A stretch of DNA of 64,000 bases, taken from positions 100,006,001-100,070,000 of the forward strand of contig JBNRSN020000007.1 in assembly GCA_051313645.2 (NCBI GenBank). The letters run 5' to 3'. Positions 5,792-50,494 of this stretch are shown here, in pieces (the stretch's first letter is position 1; each line of letters starts with the position of its first letter). The notes beneath the pieces are model-generated. The model made no database searches, was not told the DNA's origin, and saw only the letters and a list, made by a program, of their open reading frames with translations. A program made the translations under genes and the position numbers. Source of the stretch: Centroscyllium fabricii. Lineage: Eukaryota.

Positions 5792-5956
5792 TTACAACTT
5801 TTGATCCTCTTCCTCTTTTGTGAAAGCAAGATTATCATAGTTATGTGTGGTCTGTGGCTGCCGAAGTGTGCTAACTTCTGAATGATCCTGGTTGAATCCA
5901 CCATTAGTATGGCCCTTTAGATGTTTCTTCTGCACTTCTTCAAACAACTTCAAGAC
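5792..5956 (-). CDS. Host gene exon 9 (last coding): VLKLFEEVQKKHLKGHTNGGF...NYDNLAFTKEEEDQKL*
   Basis: AG acceptor (gactgaag|GTC), phase 0 matching exon 8, 165 nt ending in TAA. Confidence 0.75.
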   Translation of the reverse strand, partial: VLKLFEEVQKKHLKGHTNGGFNQDHSEVSTLRQPQTTHNYDNLAFTKEEEDQKL

Positions 5957-6031
5957 CTTCAGTCAAAATGTAAATAGTTCATTAACAGGCAAATACTAAA
6001 CACTGTGTTTAGACTTCTAGGACTGAAGTGA

Positions 6032-6390
6032 TAGAAACATAGAAGATAGGAGCAGGAGTAGGCCATTCGGCCCTTCGAGCCTGCTCCGCCATTCAATGAG
6101 ATCATGGCTGATCTTTGGCTGAGATCATGGATGATCTGTCAAGTTCAGTACCCCGTCCCCGCCTTCTCTCCGTAACCCTTAATCCCTTTAGCCTGAAGAA
6201 ATATATCCAATTCCCTCTTAAATATATTTAATGAACTGGCCTCCACTGCCCTCTGTGGCAAGGAATTCCACAGGCTCACCACTCTCTGGGAGAAGAAATT
6301 CTTCCTCAAATCTGTCCTAAATGGTTTACCCCTTATCCTTAGACTGTGGCCCCTGGTTCTGGACTCCCCCACCATTGGAAACATTCTTTC
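6032..6390 (-). mobile_element. CR1 LINE 3' fragment
   Basis: ORF MFPMVGESRTRGHSLRIRGKPFRT...GYGEKAGTGY plus CR1 3' tail. Confidence 0.9.
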
Positions 6391-7852
6391 CTGTGTTGGT
6401 TAAGTGAGTAAATATGATACCATGCCCTACACCAGAGTTTGCTGGGTTTGATTCCTAGTTTCTGCTGAGTCAGATCTTCTCAGTTGGGGAGGGACATGGG
6501 CACTTGGGGATCACAACCAGCTTTAATGCCCCTGGCCTAGAAAGGAAACAAATATAGCCAGGGTTCTCACTCCCGACTGCTATTCAGTGAGGATGTGAGT
6601 AGGATTGGATTTGGTTGTGATGGCCTCCTTAGAAGTCTGCTGGCACTCCGGAATAGTCACTTGGGTGGACTATCAGTACCCATTGTACTGTACCCCAGCA
6701 ACAGAAAGGAGCTTCAGAAGAGGATGGGAAAAAAATTACCAATAATTATACTTTCAAGAATACCCGTGTTGTGAAGCCATTGTGCATGCTTGTTACCATT
6801 GCTGCATTGCAAACAAGGCACATTTAACAGTTGGGGCAATTCAATTGGTCTTGATCCTTGGGTTTCAGTTGGGCTGGGGGAGCAAGTGGTCCTGCTGAGC
6901 TTGTATCATTGTTCAATGGGGATTTCTCCTCATTTGGAAAAACAATTGCAGTTTTTTGGTTCAATAAATCAACTATGGCTTTGAAATTACACAACGAGTT
7001 TGATAATGTATGTGAGTGGGCAGAACAATGGTAGGTGAAATGTAATACAGACAAGAGTAAAGTACCCATACTGCAATCAGGAGAAAAAATGCACAACACA
7101 CATACTCCTTGAATCGTACTGAAATAGTTAAGGATGAAGGTGAAAGAGACCCAAGAGTCAGTGTCACATTATGTTCAGCCAATGCAAAGCATTAACCAGG
7201 ACAGCAATAGAATGTTGAACGATATAGCCAAATCAGTAGAGTAAAAGTCAAGGATCAATCTGAATAATGCTCTGGTTAGAAAACACCTGCATATTATGCC
7301 CAGTTCTGGAACAGTGAAACACAAGAGAGGAATTCAAACAATAGACACAGTGCAAAGAAGAACCACAGGACTGATCCTAGTTTCAAGAAAGTGAACTTTG
7401 GGGAACCACTGGAGAAAGCTCGTACTTTCCAACCTCAAAAGGAAGGCATCTGGGAAGTGACCTTATATCGGTACACAAGGCAGTAAATAGTATGGAACAA
7501 GTACATCTGGAGAATTACTTTAAACTAAATTATGAGAATAGGAAACAGATTCAATCTAGTCTAGTAAAAACAAATGTAGTACAGATATCTTGAAGTTCTT
7601 CACATTGAGCACTGGATATATGGAATCGAGTGGTGAGAATGAAAACCCTGACAGCATTTAAGTATCAATTGGATGATAAAACAGGCGAGTGGACTTTAGA
7701 GTCTTTCTGGATGTATAAACTAAGCTGAGTCAAATGGTCTTCCTTATTTGTAATTAATTTGTAAACCTTTAGACTTTCACTTTTAAAATGAGCCCCCATT
7801 GTAAGACAACCACTTTAAAGCTGCTTTCAGAACAAAATATGTTACATCAGAA

Positions 7853-8329
7853 GGGGAGGCAGTGGCGTAGTGGTTATGTCACTAGACTAGTAAGCCAGAC
7901 GCTCAGTCAAATGCTCTGAGGATATGGGTTCAAATCTCACCACGGCAGCTGGTGGAATTTAAATTCAATTCAATTTAATTCTGGAATTAAATGTTAGTCT
8001 TAGTAATGGCGACCATGATACCATTGTCGATTGTTGCAAAAACCCATCTGGTTCACTAATGTCCTTTAGGGAAGGAAATCTGCCGTCCTTACCTGGTCTG
8101 GCCTACATGTGACTCCAGGTTGACTCTTAATGCTCTCTGAAATGGCCCAGCAAGCCACTCAGTTGTAAACAACTGCTACGCAACATTGTGGGTGTACCTA
8201 CACCATATGGACTGCAGCGGTTCAAGAAGGTGGCTCACCACCATCTTCTCAAGGGCAACTAGGGATGGGCACTAAATGCAGGCCTAGCCAGCCAGCGACG
8301 CCCACATCCCAGCAACGAATAAAAAAAAA
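7853..8329 (+). mobile_element. tRNA-derived SINE
   Basis: A box TGGCGTAGTGG, B box GGTTCAAATC, A-rich tail GAATAAAAAAAAA. Confidence 0.75.
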
Positions 8330-8369
8330 GCAACAGGACATTATTCAAAGTATTAGTTATAAATCATAC

Positions 8370-8492
8370 CTGTGATTTAGGCACAAGACCAACTCTAAAG
8401 AAACCCAGTGTCCCCGTCTCTATCTTGGTACAGTCCACAACTGTAGAGGCAATATTCTCAGGTGAAGGCCCATCGCACAATACACCATCAAC
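8370..8492 (-). CDS. Host gene exon 8 (YrdC domain): VDGVLCDGPSPENIASTVVDCTKIETGTLGFFRVGLVPKSQ
   Basis: ag|GTT...CAG|gtatga, 123 nt, phase 0-0; YrdC STVVD and R-x-G motifs. Confidence 0.92.
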
Positions 8493-8593
8493 CTGTACCA
8501 GGGATAAACAATTTTCTATGAGTAAGTAGCTATAATTTTACACATTAGAAAAGTTTTTTACAAGTCAAAGAGTAAGTTGTAAACAAACACTAC

Positions 8594-8683
8594 CTTATCA
8601 CCAAGTTTGGCATAGACTTGATTGTGGTGAGTGGTGTCTGCTTCTCCTGTTGGGTTTGCTGATGTCACTGCTATAGGCCCCAC
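8594..8683 (-). CDS. Host gene exon 7 (YrdC domain): VGPIAVTSANPTGEADTTHHNQVYAKLGDK
   Basis: cag|GTG...AAG|gtagtg, 90 nt, phase 0-0; YrdC TSAN-x-(S/T)G motif. Confidence 0.92.
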
Positions 8684-8917
8684 CTGCACTTGTACAGAAA
8701 GAGATTAGTTAGCACATCAGACGAAGGCAGCCCTATGCTCAATCCCTGTTCTGTGCTCATTTCAACCAAGGAGACAGTAAGGGCTCAATAATGAACTTCG
8801 GCCCCCAGGCAAGTGAGGGGAAAATCAGCAATGGTTCTTACTCATGATCATGACTTCTGCTGAAAAGTGCGGAGGCTGCACGAGGCCTGTATCAGGCCCA
8901 GATGAAGTTCATGCTCC

Positions 8918-11900
8918 TGTAACCGTCAATAACGTCTTCGGAGTCGAATAGTTGGTTATAATAATCAGGCTTTTATTAACTTCGTTGGAGATACACAACC
9001 GAGCTGACTGTCCCCAGAATGGCGCGGGGGATGGGGACAGTCCTTTATGTACCTCCTCCGGCGGGGGAGGAGTCATGGGCGGTGCCAGGTATCATACAGG
9101 TGTTACATGGTATTACAGTGCTATACAGGTGTTACATGGTATTACAGTGATATACAGTTTATCACATTCACCCCTTCTTTAAAAACTAAAGTACGGTGGG
9201 GTGAACAACTCGCGGGGGGGTACAAAAAGGGAAAAGAAAAACAACTAATTACACTGTGCTAAATAACGAAATATATACAATTAACGTTCTTTTGACTATA
9301 TGTTCAGTCTTTCAGGCGGTTTCGTCGTCCGCGCTGATCTTCGTAGCGCTGGTGGTGCCTGTGGTGTTCGTTGTCGTTGAGTGGCTCGCCGTGCTGGCAG
9401 TGCCTGTGGTGTTCGTTGTCGTGGGGTGGCTGGTTGCGTCGTTTGTTCCTTTTCTGCTGGTTGGCCGGTGGTGGTTATGTCACTTCCGGGTGGCGGTGAT
9501 GCCCTTATTTCGACAGCAGGGGGCGCGCTCTCTCTTTCGTCCTCTGGCTCTGGGGGGAGCGCATTGTGGATCCAGGCTTGGGGCTGGGTCGTGCTGCGCG
9601 CAGGTGCCTTGTGGACATACTGGGGTACTGGGCCCACGTGGCGGAGCTCGTACTTCGGCTTCGGTGGCTCGGGGGGGGTCACTGGGGGTTTTGGGAGCTC
9701 GGGCTGCCTGGCTGGGCTGGTTTTGGGGATCCCTGCTGGGGCTAGGTCCTTTATGGACACGGTGTCCTCCCTCCCGTTGGGGTACGCTATGTACGCGTAC
9801 TGGGGATTGGCGTGCAGGAGGTGGACCCGTTCGACTAGGGGGTCTGCTTTGTGTCCCCTCACATGCTTCCGCAGCAGAACCGGTCCCGGAGATAGCAGCC
9901 ACGATGGTAGCGAGGTCCCGGAAGCTGACTTCCTGGGGAAGGCAAAAAGTCTTTCGTGAGGGGTGGTGTTAGTGGCAGTACACAATAGGGACCGGATAGA
10001 GTGGAGTGCTTCAGGGAGAACGTCCTGCCATCGGGTGACTGGGAGGTCTTTTGACTTTAGGGCTAACTGGATGGCCTTCCAAACCGTGGTGTTCTCTCTC
10101 TCTACCTGCCCGTTCCCCCGGGGGTTGTAGCTGGTGGTCCTGCTGGTTGCAATACCTTTCGCCAGCAGGTACTGACGCAGCTCGTCGCTCATAAAAGAGG
10201 CCCCCCGGTCACTGTGGATATAGTTCGGGTACCCGAACAGGGAGAAGATGCTACTGAGGGCTTTGATAACAGTGGCGGAGGTCATGTCCTGGCAGGGGAT
10301 GGCGAAAGGGAAACGGGAGTACTCATCTATAACGTTGAGGAAATAGACGTTCCTGTTGGCTGAGGGAAGGGGCCCTTTAAAATCGACACTGAGTCGTTCA
10401 AAGGGGCGAGTGGCCTTGATTAGGTGCGCCCGGTCTGGCCGGTAGAAGTGCGGCTTGCACTCCGCGCAGACCTGGCAGTTGCTAGTCATGGTCTTGACTT
10501 CTTCGATGGAGTAGGGGAGGTTGCGGGACTTCACGAAGTGAACCAACCTAGTGACCCCCGGGTGGCAGAGGTCGTTGTGAAGGGTTTGGAGACGGTCAGC
10601 CTGTGCGCTGGCACAGGTACCGCGGGATAGGGCATCTGGGGGTTCGTTAAATTTCCCGGGCCGATACAAAATATCATAATTGAACGCTGATAGTTCAATT
10701 CTCCACCTTAATATTTTGTCGTTCTTAATCTTACCCCGCTCTTTGTTGTTGAACATAAAAGCGACTGAGCGTTGGTCAGTCAACAGGGTAAAACGCTTTC
10801 CGGCCAGGTAGTGCTTCCAGTGCCGCACTGCTTCAACAATTGCTTGGGCCTCCTTTTCGATTGAGGAATGGCGGGTTTCTGGGCCTTGGAGGGTACGTGA
10901 AAAGAAGGCCACGGGTCTGCCCGCCTGGTTAAGGGTGGCGGCCAGTGCAAAGTCAGATGCATCACTTTCCACTTGGAATGGGACGGACTCATCCACAGCG
11001 TGCATCGTGGCTTTGGCTATGTCCTTTTTTATTCCGCAGAATGCCGAGTTGGCTTCTGCAGAAAGTGGGAAAGAGGTTGATTTTAATAGTGGGCGAGCTT
11101 TGTCCGCATAATTGGGGACCCACTGGGCATAATAAGCAAAAAATCCCAAAATCCGTTTAAGAGATTTGGGGGAGTGGGGGAGGGGAAGCTCCATGAGGGG
11201 GCGCATGCGGTCCGGGTCTGGACCGATGACTCCATTTTCCACCACGTTGCCGAGGATGGCGAGGCGACCGGTGTTAAACACACATTTCTCCTTATTATAC
11301 GTGAGGTTCAGGGTTTTGGCGGTGTGGAGAAATTTTTGGAGATTGGCGTCATGGTCCTGCTGGTCATGGCCGCAGATGGTCACATTATCGAGGTACGGGA
11401 AGGTCGCTCGCAGCCTGTACCGATCGACCATTCGGTCCATCTCCCTTTGGAAGACCGAGACCCCGTTCGTGACTCCGAACGGCACCCTAAGGAAGTGGTA
11501 GAGGCGGCCGTCAGCCTCGAAAGCAGTATAGAGACGGTCCTGTGAGCGGATGGGGAGCTGGTGATAAGCAGATTTTAAATCGATGGTTGAGAACACTTTA
11601 AATTGGGCGATTTGGTTTACCATGTCCGCTATCCGGGGGAGGGGGTAGGCATCTAGTTGGGTGAACCGGTTTATGGTCTGGCTGTAATCCACTACCATCC
11701 TATTCTTTTCCCCGGTTTTCACCACGACTACCTGTGCTCTCCAGGGGCTGTTGCTAGCCTCTATGACCCCTTCTTTTAGGAGGCGCTGCACCTCAGATTT
11801 TATAAATGCCCTGTCCCCAGCACTGTAGCGCCTACTCTTGGTGGCGACGGGCTTACAGTCTGGGGTGAGGTTAGCAAAAAGGGATGGAGGGGTAACCTTA

Positions 11901-13598
11901 AGGGTTGAGAGACCGCAGGTAGTATACTGGGGGTTCCGCTTTGAGTCGCGGTTTGTGACCGTGAGGGGAGGGAGGGGTCCACCGAAAGCCATCGTAACGC
12001 TCTGAAGGTGGCACTGGAAATCCAGTCCCAGGAGTAGGGGGGCGCAGAGCTGCGGCAGCACGTAAAAACTAAACTTGTTAAAGATAGCCCCCTTTACGTT
12101 TAGCGTTACACTACAGCGCCCGGTGACATCAGCGGATTCCGATTTTGACGCCATAGATATTCTCTGGCGCGCAGGGATTACTTTAAGGGAGAGGCGCTTA
12201 ACAGTATTCTGATGTACAAAACTTACTGTGCTCCCGCTGTCGAACAGGCACACCACCTCTTCACCGTTAACTTCCACCGGCATCATTGATCTCCCCAGTG
12301 GCTGGATTGTCTTCTGATCTAGGCTCATAGATGCTAGTACTGGGTCCTCCCCAAAATCTTGATCCGGAGAGTAGTTATCTCGGTCTGGATAGTAGTGATT
12401 TTGATCCGGGGAGTAGTCCTCCAGGTCAGTTTCCTGGGATGGCTGCCTCCATGTGCTCTGCTGTTGGGTGGGGGATGGGTGCTGCTGCAGCCTTGAGCTT
12501 GAGTGCTGCTGGTTGGGGGATGGGCGAGGCCGATTTTGCAGCTCCCTTGTTCCACAGGCAGCACTGTCCAGTCTTGGTTTAACATATGGGCCTTTGCAGA
12601 CCTTTGCATAGTGCCCCTTTTTGTCGCACTTGGAGCAGATTGCTTCTCTGGCGGGGCAGCTACGTCTTTGATGCTGTGGTTGTCCACAGAAGTAACATTT
12701 CGCTTTAGCGTGGGCCGCTGTGAGAAGTTCCTCTGACGGTCTCTGCCCCCGCACTGTCCAAGATTGCGGGGCTGGGCCCGTATAGTTAGTAGAATACGAT
12801 GATAAATCTGTAGAGGCGCTGTCTAGCGCGTGTCCCAAATCGACAGTGGCCTGTAAGTCCTGGCCATTTTGTTCTAATAGTCTTTGCCTAGCATAGTCCG
12901 ATTTTAGGCCTGTTACATAGGCATCCCTGATGAGACTCTCCATATGTACTAGGGCCGTTTGTGCTCTGCAGTCACAGTCCCGTGCCAGGGTTCTGAGGGC
13001 TCTTAGGAACTGCACACTTGATTCGTTGTCCTGCTGTTTTCGGGTGGCCAGTATGTGTCTCGCGTGGACTCTGTTTGGCGCCCGATTGTATTCCCCGTCG
13101 AGGGTCCTGAGGGCTTCGTTAAATGATGAGGCGTCCACGATCATCGAGTATACTTGCGGGCCCACCCGGGCGTGGAGGAGCCGTCGTTTTTGCTCCTCGG
13201 TCATTATGTCCGTTGCGTTGGCTCTAATGTATCCTTCCAATACATTTCGCCAGTGTGAGAAGGCATTGGATGCTCCAGGAGATCGGGGGTCAACCTCGAA
13301 CACTGATGGTTTCAACATTGCAGTATCCATTTCAAGAAGTTAATAAAATTGTAACCGTCAATAACGTCTTCGGAGTCGAATAGTTGGTTATAATAATCAG
13401 GCTTTTATTAACTTCGTTGGAGATACACAACCGAGCTGACTGTCCCCAGAATGGCGCGGGGGATGGGGACAGTCCTTTATGTACCTCCTCCGGCGGGGGA
13501 GGAGTCATGGGCGGTGCCAGGTATCATACAGGTGTTACATGGTATTACAGTGCTATACAGGTGTTACATGGTATTACAGTGATATACAGTTTATCACA
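8918..13598 (-). mobile_element. Intact Gypsy LTR retrotransposon (element A)
   Basis: Two 249-bp LTRs (8918-9166, 13350-13598) that read identical, TG..CA ends, 5-bp TSD GCTCC, polypurine tract AAAGAAGGGGTGAA next to the 3' LTR. Confidence 0.97.
9296..13330 (-). CDS. Gag-Pol polyprotein of element A (1344 aa, single ORF)
   Basis: Two CCHC knuckles, protease LFDSGS, RT (PFG...YLDN), RNase H ESDAS, integrase HHCC and D,D,E (DFKG/SDRG/VER). Confidence 0.96.
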   Translation of the reverse strand: MDTAMLKPSVFEVDPRSPGASNAFSHWRNVLEGYIRANATDIMTEEQKRRLLHARVGPQVYSMIVDASSFNEALRTLDGEYNRAPNRVHARHILATRKQQDNESSVQFLRALRTLARDCDCRAQTALVHMESLIRDAYVTGLKSDYARQRLLEQNGQDLQATVDLGHALDSASTDLSSYSTNYTGPAPQSWTVRGQRPSEELLTAAHAKAKCYFCGQPQHQRRSCPAREAICSKCDKKGHYAKVCKGPYVKPRLDSAACGTRELQNRPRPSPNQQHSSSRLQQHPSPTQQQSTWRQPSQETDLEDYSPDQNHYYPDRDNYSPDQDFGEDPVLASMSLDQKTIQPLGRSMMPVEVNGEEVVCLFDSGSTVSFVHQNTVKRLSLKVIPARQRISMASKSESADVTGRCSVTLNVKGAIFNKFSFYVLPQLCAPLLLGLDFQCHLQSVTMAFGGPLPPLTVTNRDSKRNPQYTTCGLSTLKVTPPSLFANLTPDCKPVATKSRRYSAGDRAFIKSEVQRLLKEGVIEASNSPWRAQVVVVKTGEKNRMVVDYSQTINRFTQLDAYPLPRIADMVNQIAQFKVFSTIDLKSAYHQLPIRSQDRLYTAFEADGRLYHFLRVPFGVTNGVSVFQREMDRMVDRYRLRATFPYLDNVTICGHDQQDHDANLQKFLHTAKTLNLTYNKEKCVFNTGRLAILGNVVENGVIGPDPDRMRPLMELPLPHSPKSLKRILGFFAYYAQWVPNYADKARPLLKSTSFPLSAEANSAFCGIKKDIAKATMHAVDESVPFQVESDASDFALAATLNQAGRPVAFFSRTLQGPETRHSSIEKEAQAIVEAVRHWKHYLAGKRFTLLTDQRSVAFMFNNKERGKIKNDKILRWRIELSAFNYDILYRPGKFNEPPDALSRGTCASAQADRLQTLHNDLCHPGVTRLVHFVKSRNLPYSIEEVKTMTSNCQVCAECKPHFYRPDRAHLIKATRPFERLSVDFKGPLPSANRNVYFLNVIDEYSRFPFAIPCQDMTSATVIKALSSIFSLFGYPNYIHSDRGASFMSDELRQYLLAKGIATSRTTSYNPRGNGQVERENTTVWKAIQLALKSKDLPVTRWQDVLPEALHSIRSLLCTATNTTPHERLFAFPRKSASGTSLPSWLLSPGPVLLRKHVRGHKADPLVERVHLLHANPQYAYIAYPNGREDTVSIKDLAPAGIPKTSPARQPELPKPPVTPPEPPKPKYELRHVGPVPQYVHKAPARSTTQPQAWIHNALPPEPEDERESAPPAVEIRASPPPGSDITTTGQPAEKEQTTQPATPRQRTPQALPARRATQRQRTPQAPPALRRSARTTKPPERLNI

Positions 13599-16994: not shown

Positions 16995-17107
16995 CTGGTC
17001 AATGAGATGTGTAGTAACAGCGCAGTCTGGAATCCTAATGGCAATGCTCTGAGGAGTTCCAATGTATTTATCTGCATGTTTCAGTCCGAATAAGTTCAAC
17101 CATTCCC
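16995..17107 (-). CDS. Host gene exon 6 (YrdC domain): (G)EWLNLFGLKHADKYIGTPQSIAIRIPDCAVTTHLIDQ
   Basis: aag|GG...CAG|gtgaga, 113 nt, phase 1-0; SIAIRIPD matches the YrdC (T/S)(V/I)(A/G)(I/V)R(V/I)P motif. Confidence 0.92.
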
Positions 17108-22110: not shown

Positions 22111-22207
22111 CCCATCTGCCATTTGAACTGGAAAATTACACTTGACACAGTCGATGAGGGTAAAAAATCAGGATGGGGGAATATGGAAAGTAGCAAAGGG
22201 GTCTTAC

Positions 22208-22356
22208 CTCTGGGGATGACAAGACTGATAGACGAAGGCCAAACTGTCTGCATGAAGTCCCAGAGTAGAGGGTTCAACAGATGTTTTGCTGGTTCTAGTT
22301 GTGCTAAGTTGGAGATCCATAGAGACATTGGCCTCTCTTTGGCTTGTTTCTTTGTG
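22208..22356 (-). CDS. Host gene exon 5 (YrdC domain): (N)TKKQAKERPMSLWISNLAQLEPAKHLLNPLLWDFMQTVWPSSISLVIPR
   Basis: cag|C...AGAG|gtaag, 149 nt, phase 2-1; WPSSISLV aligns to YrdC WPGPLTLV. Confidence 0.92.
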
Positions 22357-22397
22357 CTGTGCAATAAAAAAGGAAATAAAAATCACTTGCATATATT

Positions 22398-23347: not shown

Positions 23348-23447
23348 TTGTAAGCCTTTTCCACAGCATCAGGACGATTGCAGGCTGCCACCAACACATA
23401 CACAGTGTCTGTTGGAATACCACATGCACCTCCATTTTTCATAATCT
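23348..23447 (-). CDS. Host gene exon 4 (YrdC start): (E)IMKNGGACGIPTDTVYVLVAACNRPDAVEKAY
   Basis: cag|AG...AA|gtagga, 100 nt, phase 1-2; PTDTVY is the YrdC/Sua5 PT(D/E)TVY signature. Confidence 0.93.
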
Positions 23448-25210: not shown

Positions 25211-25937
25211 GTTTGTACAAACGTAACATCACTTCCTTGCTTTTATATTCAATGTCCAATGTCTAATATTTCAGTTGCCTTTTAATGGCCTCTTCTACCC
25301 TCCCTCCCACCTTTACAGATCTATGTATCTGCATGCCTAGCTCTCTTTGTTCCTCCACTCTTAAGAATCCAACCATTTAGGGTATTTTTCTTTCACTGTT
25401 CTTTTCCCAAAATGTACTACTTCACATTTCTGTGCACTCAATAACATCTCCCATATAACTTTCCACCCTGCTAACCTGTGCGTTTTCTGTAATCTTTCTT
25501 ACATTTTACCAAGACCCTAATTTGGTATCAACAATAAACTCAGATTTCATTTCTCTTATATCAATTATATGAAAGTTAATAGATTTGTAAAGTTCCCAGG
25601 GAAAGTAGGTTCAAGAGACAACTGGATACCTTTATGGAAGGTGTTTTTAGTGTTCCTAATAATTGTTATGATCCTATATTATTATTTTATGATTTCAAAT
25701 ATATTAGGAAACACACCAAATGTAAAGCAGATTTAAAACTAACAACCTAGTAATTAAGTTTAAGTAATTGTTTTTTTCAGAATACAGCTACCTGCCTTAG
25801 AGGTTTAATTTGAGGAATATCAGTGCAGAAAAGAATCTTGTAATATAGGTTCCACTGTTTATCCTTAAAGATAACACAAAAATGAATTGACAGAGTTTGT
25901 ACTTTACATTTTTCTTAAGTGTTCTGCTAAATCTTAC

Positions 25938-27620
25938 CTGCAATTTTTCTGACTGATGTGGCTTTTCTTGAAGGCAAATGAGGGCACATAGCGCTGCCCT
26001 GCCCAAACCCACACAGGTTCGCCCAGGCATGTCCCATGGGCAACTGGGGGCTCTCAAAGCTCTGGTTAAAGAGGGAGGCCAAAAAGCAGTAAAAACTAAC
26101 CAAACCAAAAATGATGGTGACCCCAATATCATATCCGAAAGGATTTGAATTTATGGCATCCAATAGAAAGCTGATCAGGATCAACTGAAAGCTGAGAGAG
26201 AAGGCAAACCACACTATGTTAAGAAAGATAGTCCCGATCACCACAAAGCAATTAAAAAGCAGGAAGCAAATAATCCCGACAGCAATACCAAACCCCCTAG
26301 TGGAACCATAGAGCCCACCGTATCTGGTCAAACCCCAGATTATCCATATTAGACCATATAGAATGAAAGCACAACTTTCCAAGGTTTTACCCCGAGAAAA
26401 CGAGATTGAACCACACAGAATCTGCAGGACTCCCCCAGGAATGACGATCCAGGGCAGGACCACAGTGGCTAAAGGAGCAGAAGCATTGACGGATACAGTG
26501 ATGGCAAAGGCAGCCACAACGTTACAGGCATGAGCGAGAATCTCAGCGTCTGAATATCTGGAGTAGCCCAAATAAGGGCTGTGGGTGTCTTTGCCTGACT
26601 TCAGAGTTAATATATTCATTCTAATGAGTAAACCCTTTACGCTCCCTTGTCCAGTGGGAATAGTGAAGGACCCAAAACTATTGAAAAGGGAAATTAAAGT
26701 TAAGCAAGCAGATGCCACAAATATGGCCACACTGACACCTTGTGCACCACCATGAAAAAATCCAGTGGGGTGAGCTGCCACTGCTATACAGTAGGAAACA
26801 AAAAAAAGCAAATAAGCTCCATCAACAAGGCTTTTACTAGTCATAAACAGAGCCAGAATGAAAAAAAGGACAGCAAGGACAATAGGGACTGGAACTGGAA
26901 AGAAGGGTTGGTTGTCTTGCCAGAGCTTGTAAAGAAAAGCATAGCCCTCTGCAAATTTTAATATAGAGGTAAAACCAAAGAATGTAGCAGTCAGGCTGTC
27001 AATGGCTCTATAAGACAAAACACAAACACCAATTTGATAGACAGCTGCTGTCCACAGCCAGGGGACCTGGCCAACAAACAGACTGGAAGTTACACCTAAA
27101 ACCTGGCATCCTAACACACTGGCAGATAGCATGTTTGTAATGTACCCCAGAGCCACTGTGTCATTTGTGAAGAGGTTCTGGGGCTCAGATTTCAGATGGG
27201 AATTATTCTTGGACAAATCAGTCCCTGGGAGAATGAGTTTTCCTTTACTTAAGGAGGCAGAAACACGGCCCAACCCAAAGTAAAGCCCTATAAAGGAAAC
27301 AATCAAATAATTTGAAGCTACTGCAGAATGACCAAAAGATTGATCATATAATGCGGCAATTTCATGGGCGGTAGCAAGAGAGATAGCAAAAGCAATCATA
27401 GCCAGAATCACTTCCTTTTGGATTAACCCCACCACCCCGATGATGAAGAGCCCCAAGACGAAAGCTGAGTAACCAGGGACCAGTGCATTCCTGATCCCAT
27501 CATCTTGAACTATCTTCTCCCCGATCAAGATATGGATAAGGCCGGATCCACACCAGAGAGCTGACACGGTCAGGCACAGGTTCACAAATAACATAGCATG
27601 ACTTGAAGACTTTCTTACAC
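25938..27620 (-). CDS. Host gene exon 3: large multi-pass membrane region of SatP/YaaH (GPR1/FUN34)-like repeats
   Basis: 1683-nt open exon, cag|GT...GCAG|gtaag, phase 1-1; many hydrophobic helices; GGVLQILCGSISFSRGKTLESCAFILYGLIW and FYCFLASLFNQSFESPQLPMG resemble SatP segments. Confidence 0.93.
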
Positions 27621-27970
27621 CTGCAGAAAAACCAACCAGAAAAAAATCAATAGTAAAGGAGTCTGCATAGGCTTCATACCCATACATATACACACACATT
27701 GAGTTACATTGAATGTATAGCACACAAAGAGGTCATTCACCCCAACAAGTCTATGCTGGCGTTTATGCTCCACACAAGCCTCCTCCCACCCTTCTTCATC
27801 TAACCCTATCAGCTTCTATTCCTTTCTCCCTCATGTGCTTTTATAGCTTCCCCTAAAATGCATCTATGCTGCTGGCCTCATCTACTCCTTGTGGTAGAGC
27901 GTTCCACATTCTTACCACTCTTTGGGTGAAGAGGTTTCTCCTGAATTCCCTATTGGATTTATTAGTCATG

Positions 27971-28780: not shown

Positions 28781-31700
28781 TTATAAAGTTTAGAAGGTCT
28801 TAATTTTTTTTGTGGTTATAGTTTCTAGTGCTAGTAACCAAGTAGATCATTTAATTGGTGGTATTGATTTGATTTAACTTAAATAAAACAGTAAGTCATG
28901 GCAGGAGAGCTCCGTCCCGTGGTATGCTTGTCCTGCGCTATGTGGGAAATCAGGGACACTTCCTGTGTCCCTGATGACCATGTGTGCAGGAAGTGTATCC
29001 AGCTGCAGCTACTGACAGACCGCATTGCGGCACTGGAGCTGCGAATGGATACATTCTGGAGGATTCGTGATTCTGAGGGCGTTGTGGAAAGCACGTTTAA
29101 TGAGTTGGTCACACTGCAGGTAAACGCTGCACAGGCAGGGGGAGAATGGGTGACCACCAGGCAGAGTAGAAGGTGCAGGCAGGTAGTGCAGGGGTCCCCT
29201 GTGACCATCATCCTCACAAACAGATACAGCGCTTTGGATATTGGTGAAGGAGATGGCTTATCAGAGGAAGGCAGCAGCAGCCAACTTTCTGGCAAAGGAC
29301 GGGAAGAAAAGGAGTGGGCGAGCTATAGTGATAGGGGATTCTATTGTAAGGGCAATAGACAGGTGTTTCTGCGGCTGCAAACGAGACTGCAGGATGGTGT
29401 GTTGCCTCCCTGGTGCAAGGGTCAAGGATGTCTCAGAGCGGCTGCAGAACATTTTGGAAGGAGAGGGTGAACAGCCAGTTGCCATGGTGTAACAACGATA
29501 TTGGTAAAAAATGGGATGAGGTCCTAAAAGTTGAATATGGGGATTTAGGAGGTAAATTAAAAAATAGGACCTCAAAGGTAGTAATCTTAGGATTGCTACC
29601 AGTGCCACGTGCTAGTCAGAGTAGAAATAGAAGGATATTTCAGATGAATACATGGCTAGAGGAATGGTGCAAGGGGGAGGGATTCAAATTCTTGGGACAT
29701 TGGAACCGGTTCTGGGGGAGGTGGGACTAGTTCAAACTGGATGATCTGCACCTGGGCAGGGCCAGGACCGATGTCCAAGGGGGAGTGTTTGCTAGTGCTC
29801 TGGGGGAAGGTTCAAACTAAAATGGCAGGGGGTTAGGTACCTGAGCAGGAAGACAGAGGAAAGGGAAACAAGGATAAAATCAAAAGACAGGAAGGAGAAA
29901 AACAAAAGTGGCAGTCAGAGAAATCAAGGGTTTAAATCAAACATGGCCACTGTAAATGATAATTCTAAAAGGTCTAAGAGCATTACAAAAACAAACCTGA
30001 AGGCTTTGTGTCTTAATGCGAGGAACATTTGTAATAAGGTGGATGACTTAGCCGTGCAAATAGAGGTAAACAAATATGATATGATTGGGATTACGGAAAC
30101 ATGGCTCCAGGATGACCAAGGCTGGGAACTCAACATCCAGGGGTATTCAATATTCAGCAAAGATAGGCAAAAAGGAAAAGGTGGTGGGTAGTATTGCTGG
30201 TTAAAGAGGGGATTAACACAATTGTAAGGAAGGATATTAGCACTGAGGATGTGGAATCTGTATGGGTAGAACTAAGAAATACTAAGGGGCAGAAAATGTT
30301 AGTGGGAGTGGTATATAGACCTCCAAACAGTAATATGGAGGTTGGGGATGGCATTAAAAGGGAAATTAGAGACGTGTGCAATAAGGGCACAACAGTTATC
30401 ATGGGTGACTTTAATCTACATATAGATTGGGCTAACCAAATTAGTAACAATACTGTGGAGGAGGAATTCATAGAGTGTATATGGGATGGTTTCCTGGACC
30501 AATATGTCGAGGAACCAACTAGAGATCAGGCCATCTTGGACCGGGTATTATGTAATGAGAAAGGATTATTTAGCAATCTTGTTGTGCAAGGCCCCTTGGG
30601 TCTGAGCGATCATAATATGATAGCATTCTTCATTAAGATGGAGAGTGAACTAGTTGACTCAGAGACTAGGGTCCTGAATTTAAATAAAGGAAACTATGAT
30701 GGTATGAGGCACGAGTTGGGTAGGATTGATTGGGGAATGTCATTCAAAGGGTTGACAGTGGATAGGCAATGGCAAACATTCAACGATCGCATGGATGAAC
30801 AACAGAAGTTGTTCATCCCAGTTTGGCATAAAAATAAAACAAAAAAGGTGACTCAACCGTGGCCAACAAGGGAAATTAGGGATAGCATGAGATCCAAGGA
30901 GAGGGCATATAAATTGGCCAGAAAAAGCAGTAAACCTGAGGATTGGGAGCAGTTTAGGATTCAACAAAGGAAGACAAAGGGATTAATTAAGAGGGGGAAA
31001 ATAGATTATGAGAGTAGGCTTGCAGGAAACATAAAAACTGACTGTAAAAGCTTCTATAGGCATGTGAAGAGAAAAAGATTGGTGAAGTCAAACGTAGGTC
31101 CTTTGTAGTCAGAATCAGGGGAATTTATAATGGAGAACAAAGAAATGGAAGACCAATTAAATACATACTTTGGTTCTGTCTTCATAAAGGAGGACACATA
31201 TATCCTCCCAGAGTTGTCGGGGAACACAGGGTCTAATGAAAGGGAGGAACGGAAAGAAATCAGTATTTGTAGGGAAATGGTGTTAGGGAAATTGATGGGA
31301 TTGAAGGCTGATAAATTCCCAGGGCCTGATAATCTTCATCCTAGGGTACTTAAGGAAGTGGCCCTAGAAATAGTAGATGTATTGCTGGTCATCTTCCAAA
31401 ATTCGATAGACTCTGGAACAGTACCCATGGATTGAAGGGTAGCTAATGTTACCCCACTATTCAAAAAAGGTGGTCGAGAGAAAACGGGGCATTACAGGCC
31501 GGTAAGCCTGACATCGGTAGTGGGGAAAATGCTAGAGTTCATTATAAAAGATGTAATAGCAGAGCACTTGGATTTACAAAGGGTAAATTGTGCTGGTCTA
31601 ATCTACTGGAATTTTTTGAGGATGTAACTGGTAAAATAAATAAGGGAGAACCAGTGGATGTAGTGTATTTGGACTTTCTAAAGGCGTTCGATAAGGTCAC

Positions 31701-32828
31701 GCAGAAGAGATTAGTGTGTAAAGTTAAGGCACATGGGATTGGGGACAAGGTACTGACTTGGATAGAGAACTGGTTAGCAGACAGAAAGCAAAGAGTTGGA
31801 ATAAACGGGTCTTTTTCCGAGTGGCAGGCAGTGACTAGTGGGGTAGCGCAAGGATTGGTCCTTGGATCCCAACTATTCACAATATATATTAATGATCTAG
31901 ACGTGGGAACTAGATGTAATATCTCCAAGTTTACAGATGACACAAAGCTGGGTGGGTGTGTGTGCTGTGAGGAGGATGCTGAGAAACTCCAGTATAATTT
32001 GGACAGGTTGGGTGATTGGACAGAAGCATGGCAGATGCAATACAATGTGGATAAATGCGAGGTTATCCACTTTGGTGTCAAAAACAGGAAGGCAGATTAT
32101 TATCTGAATGGCAATAGATTGGGAGAAGGGGCAGTGCAAGGTCGCTGAAGGTAATCATGCAGGTGCAGCAGGTGGTTAAGAAGGCAAATGGTATGTTGGC
32201 CTTCGTAGCGAGAGGGTTTGAGTACAGGAACAAGGATGTCTTGCCACAGTTGTACAGGGCCTTGGTGAGACCACATCTTGAGTACTGTGTGCAGTTTTGG
32301 TCGCCTTATCTGACGAAGGATGTTCTTGCCATGGAGGGAGTGCAGCGAAGATTCACCAGACTGATACCTGGGATGGCAGGAATGATGTATGAGGCGAGAT
32401 TGGGTCGATTGGGCTTATACTCGCTGGAGTTTAGAACAATGAGAGGGGATCTCATTGAAACCTATAAAATTCTGAAAGGACTGGACAGACTAGATGCAGG
32501 AAGGATGTTCCTGATGGTCGGACAGTCCAGAACCATGGGTCACAGTCTAAGGATAAGGGGAAATCCATTTAGGACAGAGACGAGGAGGAATTTCTTCACC
32601 CAGAGAGTGGTGAACCTGTGGAATTCTCTACCACAGAAGACCGTAGAGGCCAATTCATTAAATATACTCAAGAAGGAGTTAGATATATTTCTTAAGGCCA
32701 TAGGGATCAAGGGATATGGAGAGAAGGCAGGAACAGGGTACTGAATTTGGATGATCAGCCATGATCTCACAGAATGGTGGAGCAGGCTCGAGGGGCCAAA
32801 TGGCCTACTCCTGCTCCTATCTTCTATG
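28781..32828 (+). mobile_element. Near full-length degenerate CR1 LINE
   Basis: ORF1 from 28898 (CxxC finger, SGNH esterase GDSIVR); ORF2 with APE endonuclease (ITETW, MGDFN, SDHN) and RT, broken by stops and frameshifts; 3' tail. Confidence 0.95.
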
Positions 32829-33085: not shown

Positions 33086-33099
33086 TCTATGTTTCTAAA

Positions 33100-33790: not shown

Positions 33791-33857
33791 GCGCACACAA
33801 ACACGGACATATGTCTTTAATGGGCCCACATTCCACTTTATCACTCGGGTTCTTAAT

Positions 33858-35353: not shown

Positions 35354-35938
35354 AATATATTTATAAAACCTTATACTGTTAGCTTTCATATCCTTTGCAA
35401 GTTTTTTTTTCGTATTCCCTTTTTCTTTATTTCTTTGCATCTCTTTGTTGCTTTTTATAGTTCTCCCAGTCTGAAAGATTTGAACTTTTTCTTGATTTTG
35501 TGCAAGCCTTTTCTTTGAGTTTGGTGCTGTCTGTTACCTCATTTGTTGACCATAGTTGCTCAACAACAGGAGTAGAGTGGTTGCCTTTTAGGGGTACACA
35601 CTGCTTTTGTATTGTACCAAATACTTCATTTCATTTCTTATCCCTTCGAAGTTTGCCTTACTTAAACTTAAAATCTTAGTTTGTGACTCCCATTTCTGCC
35701 TTTCAAATTCAATATCAAATTTAATCATATTCTGGTCACTATTTGCAAGATGTTTCATTACTGTCAGATTGTTAACTAATTCTGGTTCATTACTCATCAC
35801 TAAATCTGGTATTATCCTTTCTTATCTTCCTCCATTGTGTGCATGAGATCCTTTGCCGTTTGTTGCTGTCTTTGTCTATCCACTGTTTAGCATTTTATTC
35901 CATTTAGGATTAGTTTCCCCAACACTTGTACACATACA

Positions 35939-36620
35939 CGCTCACTCTCACACTCTCACTCGCTCACTCTCACCCGCTCACTCTCACCCGCTCACTCTCA
36001 CCCGCTCACTCTCACCCGCTCACTCTCACCCGCTCACTCTCACCCGCTCACTCTCACCCGCTCACTCTCACCCGCTCACTCTCACCCGCTCACTCTCACC
36101 CGCTCACTCTCACCCGCTCACTCTCACCCGCTCACTCTCACCCGCTCACTCTCACCCGCTCACTCTCACCCGCTCACTCTCACCCGCTCACTCTCACCCG
36201 CTCACTCTCACCCGCTCACTCTCACGCGCTCACTCTCACGCGCTCACTCTCACGCGCTCACTCTCACGCGCTCACTCTCACGCGCTCACTCTCACGCGCT
36301 CACTCTCACGCGCTCACTCTCACGCGCTCACTCTCACGCGCTCACTCTCACGCGCTCACTCTCACGCGCTCACTCTCACGCACTCACTCTCACGCACACA
36401 CACACACACTCACTCATACACTCACTCATACACTCACTCATACACTCACACTCTCACTTGCTCACTTACACTCACACACTCACATACTCACTCACATACT
36501 CACTCACATACTCACTCACATACTCACTCACATACTCACTCACATACTCACTCACATACTCACTCACATACTCACTCACATACTCACTCACATACTCACT
36601 CACACCCACCACACACACTC
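35939..36620. repeat. Minisatellite of 14-bp and 12-bp units
   Basis: (CTCACTCTCACCCG)n, then (CTCACTCTCACGCG)n, then (CTCACTCACATA)n. Confidence 0.95.
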
Positions 36621-37134
36621 TACACTGAATAGACCAAATAGCTTATAACCATATAAAACAAACTTCATTTACCATTTAAAATTACAACCAAAAATAACTT
36701 TAAAAAAATACAGGATTGACTTATTGGAAATTAATATTAAGAGCAAACCAGTCAACCAGTCAATAAGATACTTTCTATGCTAAAGCAGCCTAAATACAAA
36801 TTTGCAGTTAGAGGTGGGGAAGAGCGGAGATTGTTAAATGAACAGGTCTGAGACTTCACTGTACATGAAAACAACCTGGCTTTTAGCCGTAACCATTTTA
36901 CAATCAGGGCGATAGATCCATTTTAGTATTTTTAATTTCATGTCAGCGGGTTAATGTCTGAAAAATGAATCTTGCCAGCACAATGTTAACAATGGATGTT
37001 CAGGCAGCTCAGTGGCAAAATCAGGGGATTTTTTTAAAACAAAAAAATCTATCCCCTCCCCCCCTTTACCATTATTTGTGATGATTGAGACCCTGGTGCA
37101 CTGAAGACACAATTACAGCTGTTTAGAAAGATAG

Positions 37135-37410: not shown

Positions 37411-37586
37411 AGAATGTATTTTGAAATGATGTAAATTAAATGGCTTAAGAGGTGCCATGCATGCCCAGTGTCCATCTACCTTCAACAATACTAGAAAACA
37501 GTGAGTTTTCAGGACTATCACCCTGCTCCTGGCTTGTACAAATCCCCATTTGAATTGTAAACTCATGTAGATAAATCTTAAAGTAT

Positions 37587-38058
37587 CATAGAGTCATACA
37601 GCACAGAAAGAGGCCCTTCGGCCCATCATGTCCGCACCAGCCATCAAGCCCAGTCTATTCTAATCCTATTTTCCAGCACTTGGTCCGTAGCCTTGTATGC
37701 TATGGCATTTCAAGTGCTCATCTAAATGCTTATTGAATGTTGTGAGGGTTCCTGCCTCTACCACCCTTTCAGGCAGTGAGTTCCAGATTCCAACCACCCT
37801 CTGGGTGAAAAAGTTCTTCCTCAAATCCCCTCTAAACCTCCTGCCCCATACCTTGAAACTGTGCCCCCTGGTTATTGACCCCTCTACTAAGGGGAAAAGT
37901 TCCTTTCTATCTACCCTATCTATGCCCCTCATAATTTTGTACATCTCAATCAGGTCCCCCCTCAGCCTTCTCTGCTCTAAGGAAAACAACCCCAGCCTGC
38001 CCAGTCTCTCTTCATAGCTGAAGCGCTCCAGCCCAGGTAACATCCTGGTGAATCTCAG
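37587..38058 (-). mobile_element. CR1 LINE 3' fragment
   Basis: ORF RFTRMLPGLERFSYEERL...[15 protein letters not shown]. Confidence 0.9.
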
Positions 38059-38576
38059 CTGTAGCCGCACCCTGATGGTTGAATTGGGAAGTGCATCACC
38101 TGATGTAATGAATCATACAGACCAGGAAGGCCACAGGTTCTACGTTAGCTGATCTTACCTGGGGTAGAAGTTGGAGCACGACAATTGAACTCCTGGGCTA
38201 GGGTGGAGGAAACAAGCATAGCTCCTGCTCAATGTTCAGTGACCGCTGCTTAAAAGTGGCATGTGTAGATTTTGGGTGAGAATATGGCTGTGATTCCTGC
38301 TTGGTTAAATAGTCTGTTTATGACTCGCACAAGAAGGCAAGGTAAAGGAGGGCTAGCACCATTGGAACTGCATCCCATCAGGGCTGGCCCTTTCGGAAGA
38401 AGAGGCGAGAACATGGGGGGGGGGGGGGGAATAGAAGATGCCTGGCGTGATTGCTCTTTCAGTGAAATTGTCCCAAAGAATATTATTGTGCCCCATACTC
38501 TGTTCAGGGAAGCGTTAGGACACTGGAGAATGCGCTAACTAGAAAACAGAGAGAAGTTACACTGCAATACAACATG

Positions 38577-38794
38577 ATGTGGAGGTGCCGGTGTTGGACT
38601 GGGGTGGACAAATGCAAGAAGTCACACAACACCAGGTATAGTCCAACAGTTTTATTTGAAATCACAAGCTTTCGGAGCTTTTGCCCCTTCGTCAGGTCTC
38701 TCTTTCACCTGACGAAGGGGCAGAAGCTCCAAAAGCTTGTGATTTAAAATAAAACTGTTGGACTATAACCTGGTGTTGTGTGACTTCTTGCATT
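38577..38794. mobile_element. Penelope-like hairpin insertion
   Basis: Inverted arms; 12-bp flanking duplication TGCAATACAACA. Confidence 0.8.
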
Positions 38795-38877
38795 TGCAAT
38801 ACAACAGACTGGGATGCCACTAACTATAACGAATCTCCTGCGATTTGTGTCAGTATTTGCAGCATACTGTTACTTAC

Positions 38878-38982
38878 CACTATAGCCGAGAAGAGCAGAC
38901 ACGATGAGCAGTAGAATCCCGAGAGCCGAGCTGGGGATCAGCTGAACGGTGCTGTAGTAATTCACAGCCAGCAACAGCGCAC
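38878..38982 (-). CDS. Host gene exon 2: (G)ALLLAVNYYSTVQLIPSSALGILLLIVSALLGYS
   Basis: tcag|GT...AGTG|gtaagt, 105 nt, phase 1-1, hydrophobic, in frame with exon 3. Confidence 0.85.
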
Positions 38983-39065
38983 CTGACACACACAAAGGAA
39001 ATAAACAAGGGAATTTTTAAGATGGCAAGACATTTGGAAGAAAATAATTTGATGAATTAACTGTA

Positions 39066-39187
39066 ATGTGGAGGTGCCGGTGTTGGACTGGGGTGGACAA
39101 ATGCAAAAAGTCACACAACACCAGGTTTATAGTCCAACGGTTTTATTTTAAATCACAAGCTTTCGGAGCGCTGCTCCTTCCTCAGGT
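39066..39187 (-). mobile_element. Penelope-like single terminal arm in intron 1
   Basis: Same sequence as the long arm of the other copies. Confidence 0.75.
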
Positions 39188-39234
39188 AACAAAGAGAAAT
39201 GAATTAACTGGAGCAATTTATTTTCAGCGCTTAC

Positions 39235-39301
39235 CTGCACAGGTGCTGAGAATCCCCATGGAATAGTACAGGGTCTCGGTGGTCCCGTGTTCTTGTGGCA
39301 T
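39235..39301 (-). CDS. Host gene exon 1 (coding part): MPQEHGTTETLYYSMGILSTCA
   Basis: GAGATGC start, GCAG|gtaagc donor, phase 1, TATA box about 160 nt upstream. Confidence 0.75.
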
Positions 39302-50436: not shown

Positions 50437-50494
50437 TGTTATTATTACCATTATTATGACCATTGTTGTTATTATTCTGTATAATAATTGTGTT

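Follow-up and report, generated by a model that had tools for sequence, protein, structure and literature searches.

A cartilaginous-fish Ato protein: three SatP-like units joined to a divergent TsaC/YrdC-like domain in one spliced gene

The DNA analysed here, referred to below as the window, is a stretch of 64,000 nucleotides from the shark Centroscyllium fabricii (assembly GCA_051313645.2, contig JBNRSN020000007.1, forward-strand positions 100,006,001 to 100,070,000). It carries a gene of nine exons on the minus strand, 39301..5792. We are nearly certain that this gene is the cartilaginous-fish orthologue of the vertebrate protein annotated 'si:ch211-153b23.4', a 'vertebrate Ato' protein. 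Its product of about 864 amino acids (aa) has 18 transmembrane (TM) helices in three homologous AceTr/SatP-like units; a conserved linker leads from these to a TsaC/YrdC-like domain (PF01300), and a variable tail ends the chain. It is encoded by one spliced mRNA. Whole-protein work was done on public orthologues, and residue numbers follow the sawshark orthologue P0001 (868 aa). The features of the gene in window coordinates are as follows.

Exon 1 (E1), 39301..39235, minus strand: 67 nt; ATG and 22 codons, MPQEHGTTETLYYSMGILSTCA, plus one base; start of TM1 of repeat 1; donor GT right after 39235; N-terminus like that of P0001.
Exon 2 (E2), 38982..38878, minus strand: 105 nt; remainder of TM1 and first part of TM2 of repeat 1; acceptor cag/GT after a pyrimidine tract; donor G/gtaagt.
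Exon 3 (E3), 27620..25938, minus strand: 1683 nt; remainder of repeat 1, repeats 2 and 3 and the conserved linker; 90% identity to P0001 over 566 aa.
Portion of repeat 1 within E3, about 27220-27620, minus strand.
Repeat 2, about 26650-27168, minus strand, within E3.
Repeat 3, about 26050-26562, minus strand, within E3.
Linker between repeat 3 and the YrdC-like domain, 25938-26049, minus strand, within E3: conserved.
Exon 4 (E4), 23447..23348, minus strand: 100 nt; first part of the YrdC-like domain, including GIPTDTVYVLVAAC; 34 aa aligned to P0001 at 100% identity.
Exon 5 (E5), 22356..22208, minus strand: 149 nt; TKKQAKERPMSLWIS, in which the KxR motif takes its K-x-Q form, and WPSSISLVIPRG.
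Exon 6 (E6), 17107..16995, minus strand: 113 nt; SIAIRIPDCAVTTHLIDQ.
Exon 7 (E7), 8683..8594, minus strand: 90 nt; GPIAVTSANPTGEADTTHHNQ (SxN motif and family-specific THH); 100% identity to P0001.
Exon 8 (E8), 8492..8370, minus strand: 123 nt; ENIASTVVDC and FFRVG (equivalents of S181 and R195 of Pa-Sua5).
Exon 9 (E9), 5956..5792, minus strand: 165 nt; poorly conserved acidic/polar tail; TAA stop.

An earlier note made from the letters of the window had proposed nine minus-strand exons with GT-AG sites and matching phases, and its exact coordinates were borne out. A tblastn search with P0001 located exons 2-9 in eight collinear minus-strand blocks, from 38995 to 5813, and the border bases were read directly. 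The exon lengths are 67+105+1683+100+149+113+90+123+165 nt. All introns are GT..AG, and the reading phases agree: cumulative exon lengths leave remainders of 1, 1, 1, 2, 1, 0, 0 and 0 bases, and the split codons G/GT, G/GT, G/AG, AA/C and G/GG encode Gly, Gly, Glu, Asn and Gly, with no stops. The translations of E1, E2 and E9 are likewise free of stops, no exon carries a stop or frameshift, and the large E3 lies inside a 598-aa minus-strand open reading frame (ORF) at 25927-27723. Exons 4-8 share 92-100% identity with P0001, and the product is about 864 aa long. The YrdC strings quoted in the note were all located, PTDTVY in E4, IAIRIPD in E6, TSANP in E7, and STVVD and FFRVG in E8. Six query proteins matched only this same nine-exon gene, and no second copy of clade B or frog type was found in the window.

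At the border of exons 1 and 2, the RefSeq-type model of P0001 has nine additional residues (ESFISLCVS, residues 23-31) that are absent from most orthologues. The matching window bases (38983-39010) make up the pyrimidine tract that precedes the acceptor and lie behind a stop codon in frame, and we therefore retained the E2 acceptor first proposed. The P0001 acceptor at this border is probably different or mispredicted.

To follow splicing, we used contigs of sequencing runs of two kinds. Runs X10-X13 are DNA-like and identical or near-identical to exon 3, while X1-X3 are small runs that we take, as a guess, to be RNA; they come from a close relative and are about 97% identical to the window. 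The region 22150-27700 was compared with contigs of X1, X2, X3 and X10. In each of the three RNA-like runs, a single contig carried both the joint from 23447 to 25938 (2490 nt skipped) and that from 22356 to 23348 (991 nt skipped). Both joints read CT..AC in plus-strand orientation, equivalent to GT..AG on the gene strand, and fall exactly on the predicted E3/E4 and E4/E5 junctions. Neither joint occurred in any contig of the DNA-like run X10, whose contigs cover the introns instead. One X2 contig of 2132 nt extends about 1190 nt past E5. An X1 contig diverges from the genome at 27621, one base beyond the predicted E3 acceptor, and this base is identical to the last base of E2; both borders of E3 are visible in RNA-like contigs. 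The concern that exon 3 might prove not to be spliced to exon 4 was thereby removed. The junctions E1/E2, E5/E6, E6/E7, E7/E8 and E8/E9 are predicted from GT-AG sites and collinearity with orthologues. In addition, the relatives P0023 and P0072 (890 and 818 aa, with PF01300) are encoded on contigs of only 4226 and 2708 nt, so short that they can only be transcripts. The shark fusion gene is transcribed as one spliced mRNA and is a real expressed gene. The close relative in X1 and X2 carries an in-frame 6-nt deletion at window position 26580, in the loop before repeat 3, and differs from the window in about 3% of exon 3.

The E3 ORF has 389 database relatives at E<=0.001. PF01300 was found in 109 of the best 120 of these 389, and also PF01184 in 38 of them; the remaining 11, lacking PF01300, are all 547-635 aa long, and 10 of the 11 lie on contigs of <=9.3 kb. 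Identity is 91% to sawshark P0001 and 56-66% to bony vertebrates, and no protein identical to that of the window occurred among the matches listed. The named relatives among those matches come from sharks, rays, coelacanth, lungfish, sturgeon, gar, bowfin, bichir and teleosts, and further from caecilians, a salamander, turtles, crocodilians, lizards and birds; no mammal was among them. Many are annotated 'uncharacterized protein si:ch211-153b23.4' and one 'grp1_Fun34_YaaH and SUA5 domain-containing protein'. The earlier suggestion that the gene has no named counterpart therefore fell, since relatives across non-mammalian vertebrates carry the si:ch211-153b23.4 name and the architecture is in print.

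A profile search of 1.84 billion representatives gave 69 matches at E<=1e-30 and extended the family beyond vertebrates. By the names in the source records, the full-length fusion is present in five mollusc lineages, that is scallops (Ylistrum, Argopecten), an oyster (Saccostrea), a land snail (Candidula), Argonauta and a chiton (Liolophura). It also occurs in amphioxus and in another clade of fish proteins, whose annotation is si:ch211-153b23.3. Fused forms from microbial eukaryotes of the sea, represented by an MMETSP transcript and by metagenome contigs, are longer and have an additional C-terminal region. Examples of the non-vertebrate members are P0128, P0130, P0131, P0293, P0141, P0150, P0136 and P0156. 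We placed these sequences in a tree built quickly from 32 rows, with the protist forms as root and Shimodaira-Hasegawa-like approximate likelihood ratio test (SH-aLRT) support only; 28 further clade-A rows and the membrane-only fragments were left out. The window's exon 3 is joined first by sawshark and catshark (SH-aLRT 96) and next by manta (99), within vertebrate clade A (100). Vertebrate B, amphioxus and mollusc B form one group and mollusc A and vertebrate A another, with all key nodes at 99-100; in each of the two clades the mollusc proteins are sister to those of vertebrates. This topology fits a history in which the fusion and the A/B duplication would predate the split of molluscs and chordates and many losses would have followed. 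The parts of the main text of Ghasemi et al. (iScience 2026; PMC13316224) available to us mention only a few protostome sequences and suggest horizontal transfer for them; judged by our tree, such transfer would fit less well.

Two frog proteins, P0129 (Pyxicephalus adspersus) and P0137 (Pseudophryne corroboree), fall inside tetrapod clade A on a very long branch of 1.48 changes per column. They have lost PTDTVY, KxR, SxN and the S181 and R195 equivalents, reading for example PVDLGY for PTDTVY and RLL for SAN, and the annotated model of P0137 is without the YrdC-like domain. No canonical anuran clade-A protein was present among the best 120 of the 389 matches. As far as these sequences tell, frogs carry a version of the fusion with a degenerate YrdC domain.

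We then examined the membrane part. An AlphaFold2 model of P0001, built from a 41-row alignment (predicted local distance difference test score, pLDDT, 66.5), has 18 long helices, sorted into three sets of six, together with an alpha/beta domain. Repeat profiles were derived from a 44-sequence alignment that included clade A as well as clade B, molluscs, amphioxus and protists, and were compared by hhalign. Repeats 1 and 2 matched at 96.2%, 1 and 3 at 97.1% and 2 and 3 at 98.2% probability over 167-175 columns, while the YrdC profile and all six reversed profiles, used as controls, stayed below 1%. Escherichia coli SatP (from NC_000913) matched repeats 1, 2 and 3 at 91.2, 96.3 and 95.2% probability, with controls at <=0.4%. 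Structural comparison with VIA pointed the same way. The window's own AlphaFold2 model (window positions 26620-27618, 333 aa, pLDDT 87.3, predicted TM-score 0.87) placed repeat 2 on SatP chain 5ys3_A with Z 19.8 and a root-mean-square deviation (rmsd) of 2.8 over 180/188 residues, rank 1 of 48,161 chains. Repeat 3 of the P0001 model matched SatP chain 5ys3_B with Z 19.7 and rmsd 2.6 over 174/182 residues. The urea channel UreI was the second-best structural match, with Z 15.4 for repeat 2 and 14.8 for repeat 3. For repeat 1 the SatP assignment draws on the profile match (91.2%) and on the six-helix bundle in the P0001 model. The three six-helix repeats are homologous to E. coli SatP. Thus the three tandem SatP/YaaH-like units proposed earlier were recovered, by mutual homology and SatP profile match for all three and by the SatP fold for repeats 2 and 3, and the membrane region does have AceTr-fold matches. 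Curated models see less of this: AceTr_1 (NCBIfam) scored 18.7-23.4 bits against a cut-off of 50, and Pfam recognises repeat 1 in clade B and repeat 3 only in clade A. The latter is because repeat 3 retains the strings GG..Q...G, RGKT and YG..W.

The pore constriction of SatP is formed by F17, Y72 and L131 (PMC8379382), and we read the corresponding residues from an alignment of SatP to each repeat, with motif definitions (F-L-Y constriction, NPAPLGL, SYGFW) taken from the parts of PMC8379382 and PMC13316224 that we could consult. In repeat 1 the F17 position is unaligned and the others are V85 and I146. Repeat 2 has N229 (41/41 clade-A sequences), T284 (39/41) and S342 (Ala in 31, Ser in 9 of 41). 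In repeat 3 the F17 position is again unaligned, followed by Y488 (41/41) and F540 (Tyr in 28, Phe in 9 of 41). No repeat keeps the full SatP constriction. The NPAPLGL motif is not kept either: repeat 2 aligns N8, P9, P11, L12 and G13 of SatP to D, T, A, L and G in the window, and repeats 1 and 3 are unaligned there. The Y, G and W of SYGFW are retained in repeat 3 only (41, 36 and 41 of 41), and repeat 3, with its strings GG..Q...G....F.RGKT and YG..W, has the most canonical pore residues. By these residues, the three units are not equivalent, and the small polar residues at all three constriction positions of repeat 2 suggest a wider pore or a structural unit. The linker that follows carries the motif CPHLPxRKxTS, in which C612, H614 and S622 are invariant in clade A and P616, R618 and K619 occur in >=90%; clade B has similar CP..(S)(R/K)KTSG strings. 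Judging from its sequence, this motif might be a phosphorylation site or a gating segment.

The C-terminal YrdC/Sua5-family domain announced in the earlier note was found in all seven clade-A orthologues analysed, where PF01300 matched with E values of 7e-30 to 1e-33 and covered about 170 of the 178 profile positions. A search of PDB sequences with profile A1 returned TsaC2 of Thermotoga maritima and Sua5 chains of archaea, with E values from 8e-20 to 4e-14; only YrdC/Sua5 chains were found there, and no SatP chain at E<=0.01. Outside the family, the nearest matches of the domain are bacterial-type TsaC/Sua5 proteins and two standalone snail proteins. According to the parts of PMC10321239 seen, Pa-Sua5 binds ATP through K56xR58 and S143xN145 and threonine through T33, S181 and R195, and the KxR arginine is reported as needed for synthesis of threonylcarbamoyl-AMP (TC-AMP). 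The T33 equivalent T640 is Thr in 39/41 and Ser in 2/41 clade-A sequences, and K663, S756, N758, S794 and R811, equivalent to K56, S143, N145, S181 and R195, are present in 41/41. The residue before the SxN serine is Thr, a TsaC signature (PMC10321239, in the same parts). At the KxR motif the window reads TKKQAKERP (K-K-Q); the residue after the R58 position is Ala rather than Pro, and the N62 position is Arg in 40/41. At the R58 position, clade-A proteins of molluscs carry Leu or Gln, and the canonical K-x-R-P is retained in clade B, in amphioxus and in the protist forms. The domain also has a family-specific motif, GE(A/P)D(T/S)THH. On the NCBIfam model TIGR00057, four of four orthologues scored 98.2-107.5 bits against a cut-off of 123.2, while seven of seven bacterial TsaC/Sua5 matches from the same search reached 170-233 bits. 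Membership of the YciO or HypF type was considered and rejected, as the fused proteins had no such NCBIfam match (hypF gave none at E<=0.01 in 4/4 clade-A proteins).

The YrdC-like domain is also the part under the strongest constraint. Of its columns, 85/197 are invariant, compared with 14/200 to 43/171 in the repeats, and shark and goose share 82% identity here, compared with 52-63% in the repeats. The clade-A C-terminal tail has a mean majority-residue frequency of 0.40 and 0/46 invariant columns. Read from these alignments, the domain belongs to the TsaC lineage, as a divergent member under strong constraint whose nucleotide site has been remodelled; we take it neither for a decayed domain nor for a typical TC-AMP synthase. 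The earlier view that it is not the housekeeping YRDC held in the sense of a non-standard TC-AMP synthase, below the TIGR00057 cut-off and with the KxR arginine replaced.

The remainder of the window is rich in retroelements. Intron 6 contains, at 9296-13330 on the minus strand, an uninterrupted 1344-aa gag-pol ORF of a Ty3/Gypsy-type long terminal repeat (LTR) retroelement with protease, reverse transcriptase, RNase H and integrase; degraded copies of this type lie at 17707-20890 (intron 5) and 46443-54569 (upstream of the gene). Intron 6 also holds, at 14236-15798 on the minus strand, an ATG-started ORF of 520 aa that is Cys-rich at its C-terminus and matches no Pfam family at E<=0.001; it may be a domesticated or unclassified transposon protein. 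Endonuclease/reverse-transcriptase fragments of the long interspersed nuclear element (LINE) type at 24317-24892, 28898-32744 (plus strand) and 35853-36648, in introns 2 and 3, had huge contig depth in all runs. Intron 2 also contains a long, imperfect array of microsatellite-like character, in which SLSPAHSHPLTLTR is repeated. The stretch 48168-52763 holds a perfect inverted repeat of 2269 nt (100% complementary, arms 58 nt apart), each arm with an identical 444-aa retroelement integrase ORF; it reflects either an inverted duplication of very recent date or a fold-back error of the assembly.

The family has been described before. The parts of Ghasemi et al. seen (PMC13316224; preprint 10.1101/2025.05.26.656167, May 2025) report vertebrate 'Ato' proteins of about 900 aa fused to Sua5/YrdC, in two clades and in every major lineage but mammals, with three tandem six-helix Gpr1/Fun34/YaaH domains and a C-terminal Sua5/YciO/YrdC domain, and an AlphaFold model that matches SatP 5ZUG with a TM-score of 0.82. 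As their hypothesis, two chains form a SatP-like ring of six domains (a pseudo-hexamer), and import is possibly coupled to assimilation. In the same parts of the text the function is given as unknown and in need of investigation, and none of the vertebrate members had been assayed. The triplication and the fusion, and with them the whole architecture, are therefore already known, published in 2025-2026; of the earlier proviso that this might be an already characterised gene, the description in print stands and a functional characterisation does not. Otherwise, the literature mentions zebrafish si:ch211-153b23.4 only in lists of differentially expressed genes. It appears in a heat map of the top 50 host genes after Shigella sonnei infection, whose direction is not stated in the text, and, after exposure to perfluorooctane sulfonate (PFOS), it is named among the upregulated genes alongside irg1l and its neighbour si:ch211-153b23.5. 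This hints at an inflammation-responsive gene cluster in zebrafish.

The present analysis adds the Arg-to-Gln change in the clade-A active site, the pore residues of each repeat, direct splice evidence in a shark, the distribution over molluscs, amphioxus and protists, and the disabled frog version. The clade-specific change from KxR to KxQ does not appear in those main-text parts of PMC13316224 that we examined. A conserved animal AceTr protein welded to a t6A-type (N6-threonylcarbamoyladenosine-type) adenylating domain, under strong purifying selection and lost in mammals, poses a functional puzzle. To our knowledge, AceTr channels were long thought to be absent from animals.

How might such a protein work? 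The reading we favour, with somewhat less than even confidence, is that the YrdC-like domain is catalytic and adenylate-forming and would be coupled to, or fed by, the pore. Because SatP units have an even number of helices, the domain would lie on the same side as the N-terminus, taken as the cytosol, where ATP is available. The membrane part would conduct a small anion or small polar solute, and two chains might form a ring of six units as in SatP, an idea from the parts of PMC13316224 seen. The YrdC-like domain would be a working nucleotide-dependent enzyme, because six of the seven ATP- and threonine-binding residues are kept and no other part of the protein is as conserved. Like its relatives, it would form an adenylate from a carboxyl or N-carboxy (carbamate-type) substrate, with the pore to supply or control it. 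With Gln for the KxR arginine, an Arg four residues on and a score below the equivalog cut-off, it probably differs from a plain TC-AMP synthase. A coupling of acid or bicarbonate flux to adenylation or sensing is speculation, here as in the seen parts of PMC13316224. A fuller scheme, which we consider doubtful, is a transport-coupled adenylating machine: a pseudo-hexameric AceTr ring would deliver a small carboxylate or carbamate-forming solute to the remodelled site (K-x-Q, relocated Arg), where it would be trapped as an adenylate other than TC-AMP. This machine would be ancient, A/B duplicated before the mollusc-chordate split, present also in marine protists, lost in mammals, disabled in frogs and, in fish, maybe induced by infection or inflammation. 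The best explanation as a whole we regard as evenly poised between right and wrong.

Several observations weigh against this account. In the enzyme domain, the position of R58 is Gln in 35, His in 5 and Lys in 1 of the 41 clade-A vertebrates, and the YrdC part of the full-length P0001 model is poor, with pLDDT <50 at 600-669 and 756-792 and a structural match of Z 8.5. In the membrane part, repeat profiles from the 41 clade-A sequences only had no mutual similarity by hhalign (probability <=0.6%). Foldseek gave no match at E<=0.001 for either model, though SatP rows had a probability of 1.00; the SatP assignment is therefore based on the VIA Z-scores and on Foldseek probability and TM-score. 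Pfam found no family at E<=1 in the window's E3 ORF alone, and PF01184 scored 18.3-29.1 bits in 4/7 clade-A orthologues, with the >=25-bit cut-off reached in 2/7 and for repeat 3 only. With NPAPLGL and the F-L-Y constriction lost, channel activity would not be assured. The literature searched contained no transport or enzyme assay for any family member. Finally, frog relatives that have lost nearly all active-site residues and yet keep the domain would fit a non-catalytic role.

That last point leads to the first rival explanation, in which the YrdC-like domain is a non-catalytic sensor or gate that binds ATP, an adenylate or an amino acid and regulates or assembles the triple AceTr pore. Cytoplasmic nucleotide-binding domains that regulate some other anion channels offer an analogy. 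The loss of the KxR arginine in 41/41 clade-A vertebrates, the scores below the TIGR00057 equivalog cut-off in 4/4 orthologues and the frog proteins P0129 and P0137, which retain all or part of the domain, its binding residues destroyed, all suit such a role. However, six of seven substrate-binding residues are near-invariant from sharks to birds, SANPTGEADTTHH is identical even in molluscs, no part of the protein is more conserved than this domain, and clade B and the protist forms have the full canonical K-x-R-P; the very long frog branch may be a derived special case. On balance we consider this rival unlikely, if worth keeping in mind.

A second rival holds that the protein is a genuine membrane-anchored TC-AMP synthase for tRNA t6A like YRDC, perhaps using bicarbonate delivered by the pore. 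Its best NCBIfam and PDB matches are indeed TC-AMP synthases, and the equivalents for threonine (T640, S794, R811) and ATP (K663, S756, N758) are kept, as is the TsaC-type Thr before the SxN serine. However, R58 is replaced, and the TIGR00057 scores of 98-107 bits stay below the 123.2-bit cut-off that bacterial TsaC/Sua5 proteins pass in 7/7 cases. TC-AMP is also labile and has to reach KEOPS or OSGEPL1, and we know of nothing that ties either of these to membranes. Moreover, the gene is missing from mammals (according to the parts of PMC13316224 seen, and with no mammal among the named matches listed), and any housekeeping role must therefore be dispensable or covered by YRDC. Taken together, this makes a plain synthase improbable.

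The weakest rival, a gene-model artefact in which a membrane gene and a YrdC-like neighbour were wrongly joined, or a decaying pseudogene, could point to long, retroelement-filled introns and to the junctions E5/E6 to E8/E9, which were not seen in reads, but it is extremely improbable, given single contigs that span E3-E4-E5 with exact GT-AG joints in 3/3 RNA-like runs, a collinear architecture common to 109 of the best 120 of 389 relatives and exons free of stops and frameshifts, and for the E3/E4 junction it is refuted.

We finally compared the shark protein with known systems, from the most distant to the closest. UreI of Helicobacter pylori (PDB 3UX4, 6NSJ) is likewise built from a six-helix unit, in a hexameric channel, and was second to SatP for repeats 2 and 3; with 6-11% identity and a match clearly below that of SatP, it is likened to the shark protein by structure alone. 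The YrdC-like domains of HypF and TobZ are modules within larger proteins and demonstrate that the fold adenylates carbamate-type substrates besides N-carboxy-threonine; carbamoyl phosphate or ADP is seen bound to these TsaC-like domains (PMC10321239, parts seen). Standalone relatives of the shark domain have weak hypF matches, in contrast to the fused clade-A proteins, and the partner domains differ, so the relation would be an analogy of use and not family membership.

With TsaC/YrdC/Sua5 (EC 2.7.7.87; PDB 9D3H, 2EQA/3AJE, 6F87) the shark protein shares the PF01300 fold family and the equivalents of T33, K56, S143, N145, S181 and R195. Vertebrate clade A differs from these enzymes in Gln, His or Lys for R58, Ala for P59, Arg at N62 and its own GE(A/P)D(T/S)THH motif, and the shark protein is in addition tethered to 18 TM helices, is without a SUA5 domain and scores below the TIGR00057 cut-off. 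The membrane units have the same six-helix fold as SatP/YaaH (PDB 5ZUG, 5YS3, 5YS8; AceTr, TC 2.A.96), with Z 19.7-19.8 and rmsd 2.6-2.8 over 174-180 residues. SatP, however, is a single 188-aa unit that forms homohexamers (PMC8379382, parts seen) and has no cytosolic enzyme domain, whereas the shark protein has three units per chain and a YrdC-like domain; identity between SatP and the shark repeats is 12-16%, and NPAPLGL and the F17/Y72/L131 constriction are changed. Closest are the vertebrate Ato-Sua5 fusions (e.g. A0A3B3D9A3 of Oryzias melastigma; PMC13316224, as far as seen), which belong to the same family and clade, are about 860-880 aa long, have three units plus PF01300 and differ from the shark protein only in species.

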